Shown in pieces: positions 14,284-22,678 of a DNA stretch of 64,000 bases. Below the pieces are notes generated by a model, which did no database searches, was not told the origin of the DNA, and saw only the letters and a program-made list of their open reading frames with translations. Positions within the stretch are counted from its first letter, which is position 1; the number at the start of each line of letters is the position of its first letter. The stretch lies in contig BCKQ01000025.1 in NCBI GenBank assembly GCA_001600695.1, forward strand, positions 20,343-84,342, in the 5' to 3' direction. The stretch comes from Ascoidea asiatica JCM 7603 (lineage: Eukaryota > Fungi > Ascomycota). The position numbers and the translations under genes are program-made.

Positions 14284-16125
14284 ATGTCATACTTGGATTG
14301 TTCAAAAGCTGAAGATTATTTATCTTCATATCCTGAAAATGATGGTCTTGATGTTAAAACTTTAATGGATTCTAAAGTTAGAGGAGGTTTAACATATAAT
14401 GATTTTTTAATATTACCTGGAAAAATAGATTTTCCTGCAAGTATAGTTTCATTAGATTCAAAATTAACAAAAAAAATTACTTTAAAAGCTCCATTTGTTT
14501 CATCACCTATGGATACTGTTACTGAAAGTGAAATGGCAATTCATATGGCTTTATTAGGTGGTATAGGTATTATTCATCATAATTGTACACCTGATGAACA
14601 AGCAGAAATGGTTAAAAAAGTTAAAAGATATGAAAATGGTTTTATTTCTGATCCTGTTGTTGTTTCTCCAGATTTAACAATTGGTGATATTAGAAAATTA
14701 AAAGAAAAATTAGGATTTTGTGGATTTCCTGTTACTGGTAAGTTTTTTTTTTTAAATTTACATTTTTTCATTCTATTGATTATTGTTTTACTTTTCTTCT
14801 TTTCATGATGATTTTTTTAAAATTTATTAACTTTCGTTCTTCCGACTGTTGTGAACAAACGTTCTTGTGGATATTTATTATTTCTGATCTTATTCTTACT
14901 TTAAACTCATTATCATTACCAATATCAATTTCAATTTCAATTTCAAATTCATTTACTTCCTTCATATTATAATTCATACTAACTAGTACTTTTTTATATT
15001 ATTATTAAAGAAAATGGTGAATTTCCTGGAAAATTATTAGGTATAATTACCGCAAGAGATATTTCATTTCATGAAAATGATTTAACAAAAGTTTCTGAAA
15101 TTATGACAACTGATATAATTCTGGCAAAAAAGGGTATTGATTTACATCAAGGTAATGAAATTTTAAGAAAATCAAAAAAGGGTAAATTACCAATTGTTGA
15201 TAAAAATCATAATTTAGTTTCTTTATTATCAAGAACTGATCTTATGAAAAATTTAAATTATCCAAATGCTTCAAAATCAAATGAAACTAAACAATTATTA
15301 TGTGGTGCAGCAATTGGTACTTTAGATTCTGATAAATTAAGATTATCTAAATTAGTTGATGCTGGTTTAGATGTTGTAGTTTTAGATTCTTCTCAAGGTA
15401 ATTCAACTTTTCAATTAAATATGATAAAATTTATTAAATCAAATTATCCAAATTTACAAATTATTGGTGGTAATGTTGTAACCAGAGAACAAGCTGCTTC
15501 TTTAATTCAAGCTGGTGTTGATGGTTTAAGAATTGGTATGGGTTCTGGTTCAATTTGTATAACTCAAGAAGTTATGGCTTGTGGTAGACCTCAAGGTACT
15601 GCAGTTTATAATGTTTGTGAATTTGCTTCAAAATTTGGTATACCATGTATGGCTGATGGTGGTATTCAAAATATTGGTCATATGACAAAGGCTATAGCTT
15701 TAGGTGCTTCAACTTGTATGATGGGTGGTATGTTGGCTGGTACAACTGAATCTCCTGGTAATTATTTTTATAGAGATGGTAAACGTTTAAAAACTTATAG
15801 AGGTATGGGTTCAATTGATGCTATGCAAAAGACTTCAGAATCTGCAAATGCTTCAACTTCTCGTTATTTCTCTGAAGGTGATAAAGTTTTAGTTGCTCAA
15901 GGTGTTTCTGGTTCAGTTGTTGATAAAGGTTCTGTTAAAAAGTATATTCCATATTTATTCAATGGTTTACAACATTCTTGTCAAGATATTGGTTCTCATT
16001 CATTAGTTGAATTAAGAGAAAAAGTTGATTTAGGTATTGTAAGATTTGAATTTAGAACTCCATCTGCTCAACTTGAAGGTGGTGTACATAATTTACATTC
16101 ATATAGTAAACGTTTATATAATTAA
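14284..16125 (+). CDS. IMD4: IMP dehydrogenase (exons 14284-14737, 15011-16125; 522 aa)
   Basis: [21 protein letters not shown] and catalytic [11 protein letters not shown]. Intron 14738-15010: GTAAGT, TACTAAC at 14977-14983, AAG; splicing restores FPVT-E-NG. The symbol reflects the snR54-hosting intron; it is probably a single pre-duplication IMD ortholog. Confidence 0.95.
14805..14887 (+). ncRNA. SNR54: Intronic box C/D snoRNA snR54 (18S Am974 guide)
   Basis: Box C ATGATGA at 14805; guide TAACTTTCGTTCTT complementary to 18S AAGAACGAAAGTTA; D' CCGA; box D CTGA at 14884-14887. S. cerevisiae snR54 lies in the IMD4 intron. Confidence 0.9.
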
Positions 16126-16632
16126 AAAAATAATTCAATAAAAAATCAATTTCAAAACTAATATTAATTAGTTTTTTCTGCTCACATCCTCAATAATAAA
16201 CTCTTTTAATTTCTTCAATTCTATTAGTGGTGGTAACTTCATAAATAGTTTAATTTAATGTAATCCTCGTAATTTGCATTCATTGACTGTTATATTGAAA
16301 TTATCAAAGAACAGTTCAATGGTATAATTTAAATTCAAATAGTCAATAACTATTCAAAAAACATAATAATTTTATAGATTTACATCTAGTTAAAAAATAA
16401 TTAATTACTGATTGAAGTTTAAAACTTCAAAATACAATAAGCTACGATAGAAAAGTTATTTCAAAATAATTTTAATTTATTAAAATACTAAAAAAAATTT
16501 AAAACAAACTACGTAAAACAAACATTTGAAAACAAGATCAGAAAGAAAACCAAACTGTAAAAGAAATGTTAGAATTGAATTCATCTAAATCATTAAAAAA
16601 TGAATATATTTGAAATTAAATTTTATAATAAA

Positions 16633-16730
16633 TCAGGCCACGCCCTGTCACAGGCATAATATCATCAAGGTTCGAGGCTAACAACCTCAAACACAGTAGA
16701 CCGTCGTGAATTGTGGTAAAATAACATCAT
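16633..16730 (-). ncRNA. SNR73: Box C/D snoRNA snR73 (25S Cm2959 guide)
   Basis: Box C variant ATGATGT; guide TCACGACGGTCTA; D' CTGT; C' TGATGA; conserved GCCTGTGACAGGGCGTGG; box D CTGA. Confidence 0.9.
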
Positions 16731-16915
16731 TTAAATATTATAATTATTTAATCTCAATGAAAAAAAAAGAGGAAAACAAACATACCTTATTAAGTTTGTT
16801 ACTCAATATGAATTAAAGAATTTCAATTATGCAAAATTGTATTGAAAAACTAATTAAAGTTAGTATTAAAACTTTTTGGAGTATTCCCAATATTAAATAT
16901 TATATAAAGTTTGAA

Positions 16916-16987
16916 TCAGACGTATATCCATTTATCTTCCTTTATAGTCAGACATATGCTTGTCTATTCTGGTTTATTAATCATCAT
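16916..16987 (-). ncRNA. SNR74: Box C/D snoRNA snR74 (18S Am28 guide)
   Basis: ATGATGA; guide AGACAAGCATATG complementary to 18S CATATGCTTGTCT; D' CTGA; D CTGA. Confidence 0.92.
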
Positions 16988-17116
16988 TTAGCAACTTTAT
17001 AATAAGAATAAGGATTTGAAAATTGACTTCTAATTAAAAAAAAGTTAGTTAATTGTTTTAATGAAAGGGAAATTAGTTGATTATAATACAATTTCAATTA
17101 TAATTGGATATTAATG

Positions 17117-17205
17117 TCAGAAAGGCATGAATGGTTAAAATAAAGGTTGTCATCAATAAGATTACCTTAATTATGACTCGTCATCTAAAATATGGGTATC
17201 ATCAT
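17117..17205 (-). ncRNA. SNR75: Box C/D snoRNA snR75 (25S Gm2288 guide)
   Basis: ATGATGA; guide TAGATGACGAG (25S CTCGTCATCTA); D' variant CATA; C' TGATGA; second element CCATTCATGC (25S GCATGAATGG); D CTGA. Confidence 0.9.
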
Positions 17206-17432
17206 AAAAAATTAATTGAAATATTGTATAATTGAATTTGTAATAATAATTTAATTCTTGAAAGAGGATATAAACTTACACATTAATATATTAAAATTAA
17301 ATATAATACAAAAGTTATAATAGAAACTTAATTAAAAGAAACATAAGTTAGATATTTGGTTGATTTAAATATTGAATTTGAATTATATTTTTTTCTTTAT
17401 CAATTAAATGGTTAGATAAATTAAATTAAAGA

Positions 17433-17514
17433 TCAGATAAAATGGGTTTCTGAGGCCCAAGAAAGCATTGTCACTCATAGATATTATATCAGTGCCCAGT
17501 GCATATATCATCAT
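17433..17514 (-). ncRNA. SNR76: Box C/D snoRNA snR76 (25S Cm2197 guide)
   Basis: ATGATGA; guide GCACTGGGCA before D' CTGA; conserved ATGCTTTCT.GGGCC; D CTGA. Confidence 0.9.
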
Positions 17515-17699
17515 TAAAATTAATATTACTAATAATAAAGGATAATAACTGATTTTAAAATATAATAAGATATAATAAATAAGAAATAATTACCTATTGA
17601 TATAAAATAATTGAAGTTAGTTATTTGTTTTATTGCAAAATAAATTATTGAAATGATTATAGATTCATTTTCTTTAAAATTGAATGAAATGAATTAATA

Positions 17700-17768
17700 T
17701 CAGTATAAACGTTAGTCCATCATTGAAAATCAGCCAGTAATTCCAGCTTTTGTTTTATTAATCATCAT
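17700..17768 (-). ncRNA. SNR77: Box C/D snoRNA snR77 (18S Um578 guide)
   Basis: ATGATGA; guide AGCTGGAATTAC complementary to 18S GTAATTCCAGCT; D' CTGA; C' TGATGG; D CTGA. Confidence 0.92.
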
Positions 17769-18007
17769 ATTATTAATTCAAATCATTAATTTTAAAAAGA
17801 AGAATCTTTAATTATCTAAAATTGATTTAAACGTACCCTTTAGAAAAAGAAAGAAAGATTAAGATACTCCATAATGATCATTAAAATTCAAAGGAACAAA
17901 AATGAGAAAACTGAATAAAGAAAATAAATTGAAGTTAGTTATTGATTCTATTATGAATTAAACTTGTAATTGATATTATTTTTTATTATTCTATTGTTTA
18001 ATGACAT

Positions 18008-18077
18008 TCAGATATTGCAAATAAAATCATATACTGAGTATCATATACTCTAGTTTGTTAATTAAAGAAATCATCAC
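18008..18077 (-). ncRNA. SNR78: Box C/D snoRNA snR78 (25S Um2421 guide)
   Basis: GTGATGA; guide ACAAACTAGAGT; D' ATGA; D CTGA. Confidence 0.9.
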
Positions 18078-18257
18078 TACCTAACAGGCAAACAGGATAA
18101 TATATATCACTTAAACTAGTTAAACATACTCATTTGTTATTCATCTTCATTTCAATGAACCATTGATTGAATTGTTATATGATTATCATTGCAATCGATT
18201 ACTTATTTTAATTAAATAATATATTCTTCTTCTTAAATTTATTCAATTTCACTTCGT

Positions 18258-18385
18258 CTTAAATACTGCAATTATCGCCCAGGTTGAAAAAGAATGAAAA
18301 ATTTTCCAGGCGGAGGCAAAAACTTGAAGAATTCTTAGGGCAGTGCGTGCGGGTAACTGAAGTTCGAGTTAGGGCTTTAACGCGT
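18258..18385. promoter_or_regulatory. Divergent snoRNA-cluster/NUP120 promoter: Tbf1 x2, Reb1, RRPE, MCB
   Basis: TTAGGG at 18335-18340; TTAGGGCT at 18369-18376 (aRCCCTaa on the minus strand); CGGGTAA at 18350-18356; TGAAAAATTTT at 18295-18305; ACGCGT at 18380-18385. Confidence 0.75.
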
Positions 18386-18553: not shown

Positions 18554-21500
18554 ATGGATCATCTCACTGTATTTGGTGAAACTCCTATTAACTACGACGA
18601 TAATCTCCCAGTGGAGGAACTTGTCATCTTACCCCAGGACTCTCCCAATGACATTAACTTAACCAATATCAATTCAAAATCAAAATCAACAATTATAAAT
18701 CAATCTGGAATTGATACTGAAGATGAAAACTTATTATATAAAGATCCTGAATTATATTTATCAAATCATTTAGCTTCTTATTCTACCATTTTTACACTTA
18801 CAAATAATAATGAAAAAATTATTCAAAATGATGATGATTTAGAAATTTCACCACCTTCAAGTTCCAGAAGTATTAAAAGTAATTCAACTATTACTTCTCA
18901 GTTAGATGACGAACAAGAACATGAAGACATAGACTTAGATTTAGATTCATCTTCAATTTCAAATGAAAATTCAATTAAAAATTATCCTTTTGATGCTTTA
19001 AATTTAAAAATTATAAATAATTCATCTTCTTTATTATTAATTCCATTAAATTTATCATCTAATTCATCATCATCTAATCCCTCATCAAACTCTTTAAAAA
19101 ATTCATTAAAAATACTTAAAATTAATATTCCTGAAAAAATTATTTCAAATTGTTTAATAATTAATCAAAATGTTAAAAAAAATTTAATTTTAATTGATTT
19201 TTTAACTGAAAATGGTATTTTCATTCAACTTAATTTTAATATCTTTACTCATTTCTCATTCATTTCAAATAAAACCATCACCACCACAACTAGTAAACTT
19301 AATATGAAAAATTGGTGTAATGCTTCAATAATTTATAATTTTAATATAAGAAAACCAAATTTTATTTATTCTTTGAATTTTAAAAATTTTATAATTTTTT
19401 TTAAAGATGGTGGTTTATTAAATTGTAAAAAAATTAAAAATTTTAAAATTAATTCAATTTTATTTAATGATAATTCTTATTTTAATTTAACTTTTGGTAA
19501 AATTTTTAATTTTAATAAATCTTTAACTCCTAATTTAATCTCAAATTCAAATTCAAATTCAAATTTAAATTCTAATAATTCTGTATTAGATTCAAACTAT
19601 TCAATTAATTCAATCTTAGATTCTAAGATTATCAATAATCAATATCTTATAACAATTTCAATTAATAAATCTTTAAAAATTTGGCATTTACAATCAAATT
19701 CTTTAATTAAACAACAAATACTTTCAAATGATAATTCAAATACTAATAATAATAATTCAATAATTCCTTTAACTTTAAAATCAAATTTATTATCTTTAAT
19801 TCCATCTCAAAAAAATCCAAATGAAATTTTTTATTTATTAACTTATTTACCAATTGGTAATGGTTTTTTAAAATTTTGGAAAATTATATTATCTGAAAAA
19901 AATCAAAATTGTGAATTGATTGATTTAGGTTCAAATTTTGAAATTATTCCAATTTTACCTTCAAATTCATTATCAAATAATTCTAAAACTAATAATGATA
20001 ATACTAGTACCACTACTACTGATAATAATAATTCAAATTGGTTTATTTCTGATTTTAAATTAATTAATTCAAATTTCTTGAAAATTAATAAAAACTTATT
20101 TAATAATAAATTTAATGATGAAAATTTATTCTCTGTTTTCATACTTTGGAAAAGTAATATTTCAACAAATATTCAATTATTATCAATTGATATTTCAAAT
20201 GGTAATAAATTTTGGTTTAATTCAAAAATTAATAATTATATCACCAATACTACTAATAATAATTTTATCACTAATAATAATTTCTTAGATTCTGAATCAT
20301 TTTCTGAATATTTCATAAATAAAATTTTTGATCAATCAATTTATCCAAATTTAATTATTAAAATTGCATTACCAATTTTTGAAAAATTATTTAATTCAAA
20401 TGAATCTTTAGATTCTTCAATTAATTCTAATTCTAATTCTAATTCCAATATTAATAATTATTCAAAAAAGTTTCCAATTGATTTATCTTTAAGAGAAAGA
20501 TCTTGTAAAATTTTAAATAAATTAATTATAAATTCAAATAATTATGAAAATGATTTAAAACTTCAATGGCAAAGATTTGATTCTTTATTAAATCAATTAA
20601 TTAAAAAATCAAATGAACCTTTATCTTTATCTTTAATTCCAAATAATAATTTATTAATTTTAAATAAAAATTTAAATTTCTCAAATTTTAAAATTTTATC
20701 AGATTTTCAAATTTTATATTTAAATTCAGACTTTCAAATCAATAATTCTAATCAATTAATTTTAAATCCAAATTTCAATTCTTTCAAAAGAAAATTCTCT
20801 ATTTCAAATTCAAATGATCATAATCAAGAAATTTTAAATTTTATTAATGTAATAAAAATTTTTTCAAAATCATTACCTCAAATTGTTTTAAATAATCTTA
20901 AAAATCAACTTAATAATCATTCTTCAATAAATTCAATTTCTTTAAATGATCAAATGAATGATATTTTTACTTCATGTCTTGCAGGACAAATTAATCTTGA
21001 TTTATTAGAAGCTTTAAGTAATCAATTAAATAAAATCCCAAATGCTTTAAATATTATTGATTATCTTGTTGATTTACCTAATGAATTTGATTTCAATTCA
21101 ATTTTCTTGAATTATGTTTCTAATTTTAATAAAGAGGAGTTTTTCAAAAATTCCTTATTATCTCAATCTTTTAAAGATTTATTAATTATTCTTCAAAGTA
21201 TTTATCTAAATATTATTCTTATGCTTTTAGTATTGAATTTCAACAATGATCAATCTGAAGTTTATTTTGAAAAATTATTATCATATTATAGTAATATTAA
21301 TTTAGCTTTACTTTCAATGGACGTTAATTTTGATTTAATTTTCTCCGATGAAGATAATGATGGTGATTTTGATTTATCTGGTTCAAATTCTTTAATAAAA
21401 CCTATTGAAATAAAGAAAAATAATGTAAGTAATTTATCTTCGTCTTTATTCATTTTTGTTGTCAACAAACATTTAAAAATTAATTTAGCATTTAATAGTG

Positions 21501-22678
21501 ACTTAAATATTACTCTCAAATATTTACTTTCCTATATTAATTCGAAATATTTTCTTTATAGTATTTCCTCAACTCTATTATCATATTCACATGCTAATAT
21601 ACTAAGGAACAGATTTTATATATATTTTGATAATTCAGCCATCAGTGATTTATTAAAAGCTTTAACTCTTTTTCAAACTGGAGAAGTAAGCAGATCTTTT
21701 TCCTTATTTCAAAATAATGCTAGTAAAATTTTGGATTATAAAATAACCAGAAAGGATTTCTTATCAATTAAGGGCATTGAACATATAGATATTTTTTTCA
21801 ACGAAAAAGAAATAATTGATGAAGATGATGAATTAGCAATTGATATTGAGGTTAAATCAAAATCTTTATCTTCATATTATTTCGACTTATCTCTTTTATT
21901 CTCCGATAAACATTATTTTTCAACTGCAATCAAATTTTCTAAATTATCATTAGATATCCTATTACAAGATGGAAATAAAAATGAAAATTTAATACAAAGA
22001 AATTATGAAAATATGTTTGTTATCTCTCTGGAACTATCAGATTTCGATGGGGCCTATAATGCATTAATGAAAATAAAATCAGAACCAATTAAAGTTAAAT
22101 GTTTGAAAAAATTCATCTCAAAATCATTTCATTCCTCCTCAGATGACATTAAAATGTTGGTACTGTACCCATTTCTTGGAACTGACGATACTGTTGATAC
22201 AATATTATTTCAAGAAGCAAATTCCTTTGACTTTGTCAAAACTACAAGAGAAGAATATTGGATAAATTTCAACAAAGCCTTGCGATATTTTAAAGTTCTT
22301 TATTCTTGGAGATTGAATCACAAAAATCCTAGGGGTGCTTGTGAAGCATTATACCATTTTATAAGCAAATATCACTACACTATTTCTGTTAACGGAGAAA
22401 ATAGTAAGGCTCTTATAACTTCTAGTTCTTCAAAGAAGTTCAACAAAAAGCTGAAAGCCAGAAATTTAACAATATTTCAGCTATACAGTATAGTCTTAAA
22501 TTTATTAAAGACATTCAAAAGTGAAGATGACAGGTGGATATTGAAACAGAATTTAGAATATTTGTATAAAGATAAAAAACATGAGGATGAGTTTTTACTT
22601 CTAACTTTTAATGACTTAAGAGATGAGTTTAATTCATTTACTAAAACCATAGATGATAGCTTTTCGGTTGAGATATAA
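18554..22678 (+). CDS. NUP120: Nucleoporin Nup120/Nup160
   Basis: FKDGGLL and LITISINKSLKIWHL beta-propeller motifs; C-terminal YKVLYSWRL..NPRGACEALY-type motif; 1374 aa. Confidence 0.8.
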   Translation: MDHLTVFGETPINYDDNLPVEELVILPQDSPNDINLTNINSKSKSTIINQSGIDTEDENLLYKDPELYLSNHLASYSTIFTLTNNNEKIIQNDDDLEISPPSSSRSIKSNSTITSQLDDEQEHEDIDLDLDSSSISNENSIKNYPFDALNLKIINNSSSLLLIPLNLSSNSSSSNPSSNSLKNSLKILKINIPEKIISNCLIINQNVKKNLILIDFLTENGIFIQLNFNIFTHFSFISNKTITTTTSKLNMKNWCNASIIYNFNIRKPNFIYSLNFKNFIIFFKDGGLLNCKKIKNFKINSILFNDNSYFNLTFGKIFNFNKSLTPNLISNSNSNSNLNSNNSVLDSNYSINSILDSKIINNQYLITISINKSLKIWHLQSNSLIKQQILSNDNSNTNNNNSIIPLTLKSNLLSLIPSQKNPNEIFYLLTYLPIGNGFLKFWKIILSEKNQNCELIDLGSNFEIIPILPSNSLSNNSKTNNDNTSTTTTDNNNSNWFISDFKLINSNFLKINKNLFNNKFNDENLFSVFILWKSNISTNIQLLSIDISNGNKFWFNSKINNYITNTTNNNFITNNNFLDSESFSEYFINKIFDQSIYPNLIIKIALPIFEKLFNSNESLDSSINSNSNSNSNINNYSKKFPIDLSLRERSCKILNKLIINSNNYENDLKLQWQRFDSLLNQLIKKSNEPLSLSLIPNNNLLILNKNLNFSNFKILSDFQILYLNSDFQINNSNQLILNPNFNSFKRKFSISNSNDHNQEILNFINVIKIFSKSLPQIVLNNLKNQLNNHSSINSISLNDQMNDIFTSCLAGQINLDLLEALSNQLNKIPNALNIIDYLVDLPNEFDFNSIFLNYVSNFNKEEFFKNSLLSQSFKDLLIILQSIYLNIILMLLVLNFNNDQSEVYFEKLLSYYSNINLALLSMDVNFDLIFSDEDNDGDFDLSGSNSLIKPIEIKKNNVSNLSSSLFIFVVNKHLKINLAFNSDLNITLKYLLSYINSKYFLYSISSTLLSYSHANILRNRFYIYFDNSAISDLLKALTLFQTGEVSRSFSLFQNNASKILDYKITRKDFLSIKGIEHIDIFFNEKEIIDEDDELAIDIEVKSKSLSSYYFDLSLLFSDKHYFSTAIKFSKLSLDILLQDGNKNENLIQRNYENMFVISLELSDFDGAYNALMKIKSEPIKVKCLKKFISKSFHSSSDDIKMLVLYPFLGTDDTVDTILFQEANSFDFVKTTREEYWINFNKALRYFKVLYSWRLNHKNPRGACEALYHFISKYHYTISVNGENSKALITSSSSKKFNKKLKARNLTIFQLYSIVLNLLKTFKSEDDRWILKQNLEYLYKDKKHEDEFLLLTFNDLRDEFNSFTKTIDDSFSVEI

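Follow-up and report, generated by a model that had tools for sequence, protein, structure and literature searches.

Nested splicing, with an internal exon of negative length, and recursive splicing of snoRNA host genes have been shown by RNA-seq in Candida species (Donovan et al. 2016, PMC5033589), and exon-less polycistrons, namely snR57-snR55-snR61 and snR41-snR70-snR51, are reported from Candida, Lodderomyces, and Debaryomyces (PMC5033589; Luo et al. 2013, PMC3596301). In yeast, the release of intronic snoRNAs by debranching and trimming is established, and in C. albicans five of the seven snoRNAs of the cluster considered here are intronic (PMC5033589). A separate literature deals with stwintrons, such as the one of type [D2,3] described for bioDA in Sordariomycetes and Botryosphaeriales (Flipphi et al., PMC5639578); apart from [D1,2], stwintron types are called rare (PMC12403724), and complex introns of the types [D4,5], [D6,7], and [D7,8] in the Lipomyces reticulon gene have been tested by RT-PCR (Ag et al. 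2020, PMC7138796). The stwintron literature that we searched makes no mention of snoRNAs, and our literature search returned nothing on snoRNA introns in Ascoidea.

The locus described here, the junction between snR75 and snR74 in Ascoidea asiatica, shares features with each of these systems. As in the Candida polycistrons, the host is non-coding, each intron carries one C/D snoRNA, no exon lies in between, and removal of the first intron would rebuild the donor of the next. The Candida polycistrons, however, have either a single donated G (exon -1) or a zero-length exon, whereas here two bases would be donated (GT/AAGT, the slash marking the split), and in Candida snR74 is exonic. The 61 exon-less junctions in Table S3 of Luo et al., none of them split, do not include snR75/snR74 (PMC3596301). 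With bioDA the junction has in common an internal U2 intron between nucleotides 2 and 3 of the external donor; unlike it, bioDA is a protein-coding gene of filamentous fungi without snoRNA cargo, and its intron appeared inside an older one, while at snR75/snR74 two ancient snoRNA introns, once separate, have probably fused as the exon between them collapsed. The Lipomyces reticulon case resembles that of Ascoidea in belonging to the Saccharomycotina, in having different registers at one position within a genus, and in its abutting donors (seen in A. rubescens), yet it concerns a coding gene, has no [D2,3] type, and carries no cargo. The first-pass annotation, made from the A. asiatica sequence, had pointed to nested snoRNA-intron splicing in the Candida lineage and to stwintrons in filamentous fungi; the arrangement is indeed of a known kind, given nested snoRNA splicing in Candida (PMC5033589) and [D2,3] stwintrons in Pezizomycotina (PMC5639578).

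The snoRNA cluster and its host gene

The snoRNAs snR78 to snR72 form cluster I of the Ascomycota, in which snR74 always stands between snR75 and snR73 and whose S. cerevisiae version is cut by Rnt1 (PMC5824354). The window, i.e., the whole stretch of 64,000 nt that was analysed, has a G+C content of 24% and holds the A. asiatica version on its minus strand between IMD (plus strand, end at 16125) and NUP120 (18554-22678, plus strand), with snR78-77-76-75-74-73 in the conserved order. The snoRNAs, their order, the extent of about 1.5 kb, and the head-to-head position with NUP120, found in several yeasts, agree with cluster I elsewhere; the A. asiatica version differs in that its six snoRNAs all appear intronic, snR72 is missing, and two junctions are exon-less. 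All six have a branch site and an acceptor on their 3' side; consensus donors precede only snR78, snR77, snR75, and snR73. In detail, snR78 (18081-18006) lies in an intron at 17911-18129 (GTATGT, AACTAAC, CAG), snR77 (17772-17698) in one at 17594-17836 (GTACGT, AACTAAC, TAG), snR76 (17519-17429) in a probable intron at 17327-17593 with a weak donor (GTAATT, ATCTAAC, AAG), and snR73 (16736-16631) in an ordinary intron at 16555-16785 (GTATGT, TTCTAAC, CAG). The complex intron that carries snR75 and snR74 is flanked on its 5' side by a predicted non-coding exon of 45 nt (17282-17326), placed by the AAG acceptor at 17329-17327, and on its 3' side by one of 64 nt (16786-16849). When the exons of the host are joined in silico, the longest ORF starting with ATG has 13 codons.

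The host promoter is likely to lie in the short intergenic stretch between the cluster and the divergent NUP120 (18258-18375, minus strand), which the two genes share head-to-head, to judge from motif matches to a Reb1-like TTACCCG at 18356, two copies of GCCCTAA, and a TATA-like TATTTAAG at 18265; the clusters of A. rubescens, Cyberlindnera, and Wickerhamomyces have these motifs on their 5' side too. The best explanation of the layout is a single Pol II non-coding transcript, from whose spliced lariats the snoRNAs would be freed. snR72 is absent from the A. asiatica cluster (16300-16555) and present in that of A. rubescens; across the assembly, neither a match to the snR72 Rfam family nor its guide 14-mer was found, the snR74 guide 14-mer being found as a positive control, and snR72 may have been lost, have diverged, or lie within a gap. 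A second match of the cluster to the genome's own DNA proved to be low-complexity A/T sequence and not a second cluster.

Regarding the neighbours, the IMD intron (14738-15010, plus strand) carries snR54 (14801-14889) between GTAAGT, TACTAAC at 14977, and an AAG acceptor, which is used in preference to a TAG immediately 3' of the branch site. IMD has been relocated away from RPS1, its neighbour in A. rubescens and Pachysolen, and in neither of these does it adjoin the snoRNA cluster; the closest match of the IMPDH is that of A. rubescens (87%), the next best being 81%. The pairing of NUP120 with the cluster is kept in six yeasts, and no conserved cluster neighbours are reported across major lineages (PMC5824354).

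Signals of the snR75/snR74 intron

The complex intervening sequence measures 432 nt (16850-17281, minus strand) and has the layout of a 182-nt snR74 intron whose donor is interrupted, after its second nucleotide, by a 250-nt snR75 intron. It opens with GT (17280-17281), bases 1 and 2 of the external donor, followed by the internal donor GTAAGT (17274-17279), the box C/D snoRNA snR75 (17115-17207; Rfam RF01185 at 67.5 bits, gathering score 40), the internal branch site AACTAAC (17044-17050), 14 nt before the acceptor end, and the internal acceptor TAG (17030-17032), which is the first AG past the branch. Next come AAGT (17026-17029), bases 3 to 6 of the external donor, the box C/D snoRNA snR74 of the U27 family (about 16916-16992), the external branch site TACTAAC (16859-16865), and the external acceptor TAG (16850-16852). 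The positions that the first-pass annotation had given are all correct, as re-reading of the minus strand confirmed.

The internal intron (17279-17030) is thus complete in itself, with a canonical donor, a branch site, and an acceptor, and the external donor is split between nucleotides 2 and 3 such that removal of the internal intron restores a donor of the form GURWGY. Joining GT (17281-17280) to AAGT (17029-17026) does yield GTAAGT, as originally claimed. The external branch site and acceptor are accompanied by no other usable donor: from the internal TAG to box C of snR74, the only words starting with GT or GC are GTCAAT, GTTGCT, and GCTAAA, none of them of donor consensus, so the claim that snR74 lacks a donor of its own holds as well. 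On these motifs, the split donor is the sole reading that would provide the strong 3' signals of snR74 with a nearby consensus donor. GTGTAA at 17281, taken as a plain donor, was rejected with only 4 of 11 U1 matches. The internal exon has a length of -2 at snR75/snR74 and of 0 at snR77/snR76; a ratchet AG/GT site is absent from the former, where AAGT follows the acceptor, and present at the latter, with the weak GTAATT.

It is highly improbable that snR74 instead sits in an ordinary intron opened by a non-consensus donor after a 2-nt exon (AA/GTCAAT, 17027) or by another cryptic site. Exons of 1-6 nt do occur in the other snoRNA clusters of this genome, and snR76 probably relies on the weak GTAATT; against this, GTCAAT lacks both A or G at +3 and G at +5, is found upstream of branch sites three times against 3.8 expected, and has no counterpart in A. 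rubescens.

The identity of snR74 is given by its boxes (C at 16987, guide at 16964-16952, D' at 16951-16948, and D at 16919-16916, minus strand), by its slot between snR75 and snR73, and by a match to SNORD27 (RF00086) at 31.9 bits (E 0.005). This is below the gathering score of 52, as are the 35-43 bits of other yeast snR74, and the cut-off is therefore unsuited to yeasts. The D' guide, which we take to pair with the 5' end of the 18S rRNA (Am28), is identical in A. rubescens and in most of the loci compared, and the exact guide 14-mer occurs once in the genome assembly, making snR74 a single-copy gene. A search for rDNA gave no match in the assembly.

The probability that a random junction yields a split consensus donor, whichever of five registers is allowed, is 0.0019 (from a 264 kb genome sample) to 0.0031 (from the composition of the cluster). 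For a 130-nt spacer, the chance of holding TACTAAC with YAG is about 0.003, and that of any NNCTAAC with YAG about 0.02. The distance of 50 nt from box D to the branch site compares with a median of 47 (quartiles 45-49) among 76 fungal snR74 loci. A scan of the whole window for a branch site followed by YAG/AWGT returned 2 matches against 1.6 expected; the half-site alone is therefore uninformative.

As for the hexamer itself, GTAAGT is the donor of both the IMD intron (14738), at a position taken by GTATGT in A. rubescens, and the snR67 intron; on this evidence it is a working donor in this genome. Enrichment of hexamers upstream of branch sites marks GTATGT as the main donor in a set too small to rank GTAAGT, and for this reason the case for its use rests on these two orthology-anchored introns. 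The snR67 host is itself non-coding, with snR67 alone in an intron of the form GTAAGT..TACTAAC..TAG (G000:C5 504239-504317, minus strand), and no snR53 was seen by eye beside it.

Ascoidea rubescens, other fungi, and the likely order of splicing

Orthologous clusters were located through homologues of NUP120, and a metagenome scan for snR75 added 120 stretches. The cluster is syntenic in A. rubescens, Komagataella kurtzmanii, Kuraishia capsulata, Wickerhamomyces mucosus, Cyberlindnera jadinii, and one further yeast; the NUP120 of Saccharomycopsis has different neighbours. In A. rubescens the cluster (locus L127) is head-to-head with NUP120, and here two donors abut (GTAAGT GTATGT, 6389-6378), followed by snR75 and then by TTACTAAT..TAG. 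Its snR74 has no donor of its own and is followed by TACTAAC..TAG (5943-5927). If the inner donor is used first, GTAAGT would be left as the external donor of snR74, which would make this a [D6,7]-like arrangement. The predicted external donor is hence GTAAGT in both species, the internal intron following its base 6 in A. rubescens versus its base 2 in A. asiatica. This upstream "spare" GTAAGT, together with the A. asiatica DNA, supports the split-donor reading of the [D2,3] type put forward in the first-pass annotation; the exact [D2,3] register occurs in one species only, A. asiatica. The spacers of the two Ascoidea have otherwise diverged, which suggests that these signals are kept by selection. 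An error in the assembly, such as a spurious GT repeat (GTGT) or a lost short exon, is conceivable in a draft that is AT-rich, but it would require two separate pieces, GT and AAGT, both to be wrong by luck, and the nesting is kept in A. rubescens; we regard it as extremely improbable.

A CTAAC branch with an AG after snR74 was found in only the two Ascoidea among 13 budding-yeast loci. The 11 others, which comprise five named or syntenic loci and six metagenomic ones assigned from sequence style, have no such pair, with one weak ATCTAAT among them. In this comparison, snR74 has kept its 3' signals just where a hidden donor is present. The same 11 loci, and the absence of snR74 from the verified introns of C. 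albicans, would also suit an exonic snR74 freed by endo- or exonucleases, as in Candida, Komagataella, Kuraishia, and Cyberlindnera, with TACTAAC..TAG being a relic or a chance word. That both Ascoidea have a perfect TACTAAC..TAG despite diverged spacers, at a chance of about 0.003 each, and that TACTAAC stands at the right distance from box D, make this very unlikely. In two metagenomic yeast loci (L075 and L108), snR74 is preceded by GTATGC and followed by a branch-like word that lacks a near acceptor; these signals are possibly relics. Among other fungi, an own donor and an ordinary exon precede snR74 in 68 of 72 loci by a permissive pattern. In one fungal metagenome contig (Ga0160427_10018582, L010) the exon at snR75/snR74 is of zero length (TAG/GTAATT), the cluster lacking snR76, and in another locus (L116) it has 3 nt; the exon before snR74 can thus collapse.

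The rebuilt GTAAGT, which exceeds chance, the nesting in A. rubescens, and the 11 other loci without branch plus acceptor are the reasons for which we consider it likely that the introns of snR75 and snR74 are spliced in order, from the inside out, the exon at their junction having shrunk to "minus two". The shared-G nested donors in clusters II and III of this genome also speak for this reading. In the first step, the nearest sites (GTAAGT at 17279, the branch at 17045, and TAG at 17030) would pair, and the 250-nt snR75 lariat would leave; the ligation would bring GT and AAGT together into a new GTAAGT donor. A second spliceosome would then pair this donor with TACTAAC and TAG at 16850 and remove a lariat of 182 nt, predicted to start with GUAAGUCAAU and to be branched at 16860. 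Each lariat would be debranched and trimmed to one snoRNA, and the final exon junction would be 17282^16849.

The first-pass annotation had called this two-step order obligatory. That can be upheld for snR74 in its own lariat, but removal in one step (17279-16850) is chemically possible and is seen as an alternative for the [D6,7] intron of L. starkeyi (PMC7138796). By analogy with this species, one-step removal of both snoRNAs, leaving GT in the exon (a two-base difference), may accompany the ordered route. Nor is the nesting essential in principle, given that most budding yeasts can make snR74 without an intron. A rival reading has a single donor with two acceptors, GTAAGT at 17279 joining TAG at 17030 or TAG at 16850, the latter giving a 430-nt lariat of two snoRNAs that nucleases cut apart, with the rebuilt donor incidental. 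Alternative acceptors for zero-exon clusters are allowed for by Luo et al. 2013 (PMC3596301), the L. starkeyi [D6,7] intron also leaves in one step (PMC7138796), and exon skipping is a minor route in cluster I of C. parapsilosis (PMC5033589). We nevertheless find it unlikely, as it would leave the perfect junction donor (P about 0.003) and the second donor of A. rubescens unexplained, the proximal branch and acceptor are strong, and the spacer has no Rnt1-type hairpin in a crude scan. That scan detected no NGNN-capped hairpins in the snR75-snR74 or snR74-snR73 spacers of either Ascoidea, and likewise none in several yeasts with exonic snR74. The junction is, then, most likely a [D2,3] stwintron that would free two snoRNAs in order.

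The annotation had overlooked a tandem acceptor, in that AAG (17029-17027) directly follows the internal TAG, a kind of acceptor that this genome uses in its IMD intron. Use of this AAG would give GT/TCAA, a dead end in which the rebuilt donor is destroyed, and the TAG/AAG pair could thereby tune the output of snR74.

Possible origin of the nesting, and other exon-less junctions

Most likely, separate ancestral introns of snR75 and snR74, which filamentous fungi still show, lost their exon and overlapped in Ascoidea, and other yeasts de-intronised snR74. In Komagataella, Wickerhamomyces, and Cyberlindnera, a T precedes the snR75 donor and an A follows the acceptor, and in C. jadinii the donor is also preceded by GT. 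This gives a weak hint, obtained post hoc and with four other loci that do not fit, that the -2 state predates Ascoidea. Possible decayed split donors are also visible in yeasts with exonic snR74 (L006 8820-8600, L166, and L153), namely CT/ACGT in Komagataella, GT/ACAA in Cyberlindnera, and CT/ATTT in Wickerhamomyces. A somewhat unlikely course is re-intronisation: the ancestor shared by most budding yeasts would have had snR74 in an exon, Ascoidea would have duplicated the snR75 donor and gained a branch and an acceptor, and the internal intron would have slid by four bases, from [D6,7] to [D2,3]. If true, this would allow both an intron gain and the sliding of an intron to be traced, and A. 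asiatica, whose three clusters have four exon-less junctions, would be a natural model of how the order of splicing sets the proportions of neighbouring snoRNAs.

Within the literature searched, the new elements are the predicted snR75/snR74 junction, a putative non-coding [D2,3] host in budding yeasts with a snoRNA in each intron, and an apparent switch between [D2,3] and [D6,7] within a genus; priority for the -2 junction is uncertain, as Mitrovich et al. 2010 may hold a -2 case. If spliced as predicted, the locus would bring the rare [D2,3] stwintron into budding yeasts, and into a non-coding gene whose two introns both carry essential-pathway cargo, and it would join the literatures on stwintrons and exon-less snoRNA hosts in one series of exon sizes, 0, -1, -2, and -6. 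A. asiatica and A. rubescens, whose internal introns occupy different registers of a shared donor, offer a clean, small test case for intron sliding and for intron definition in yeasts. The textbook mechanism of splicing is unchanged by the finding.

The second exon-less junction of the window, snR77/snR76 (17593-17596, minus strand), has a zero-length exon, TAG/GTAATT, the A. rubescens counterpart being TAG/GTATAT (L127 6729-6718). The donor is weak in both Ascoidea and GTATGT in other yeasts, and the upstream exon, which ends in AAAG(G), may compensate for this. Such a zero-exon site at snR77/snR76 is known from Clavispora, Debaryomyces, Yarrowia, and Schizosaccharomyces (PMC3596301). Cluster II (snR57-55-61; L003 1230-1930, G000:C9 about 494.4-495.1 kb) reads G/GTATGT, snR57, then TAG/TATGT, snR55, the shared G of the second donor being rebuilt from the G of the upstream exon, and has a 4-nt exon, ATAA, before the snR61 intron. 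Cluster III (snR41-70-51; L151 1440-2270, G000:C3 about 690.2-691.0 kb) was located through snR41; the family search of the genome for snR70 was blank, and the snR70 candidate of this cluster is below Rfam detection. It has the same shared G at snR41/snR70 (G/GTATGT, snR41, TAG/TATGT), and an exon of 1 or 6 nt precedes the snR51 intron. The nested donors with a shared G in clusters II and III take the form that RNA-seq has demonstrated in Candida (PMC5033589), and the snR41/snR70 junction has a zero exon in Candida albicans and Debaryomyces.
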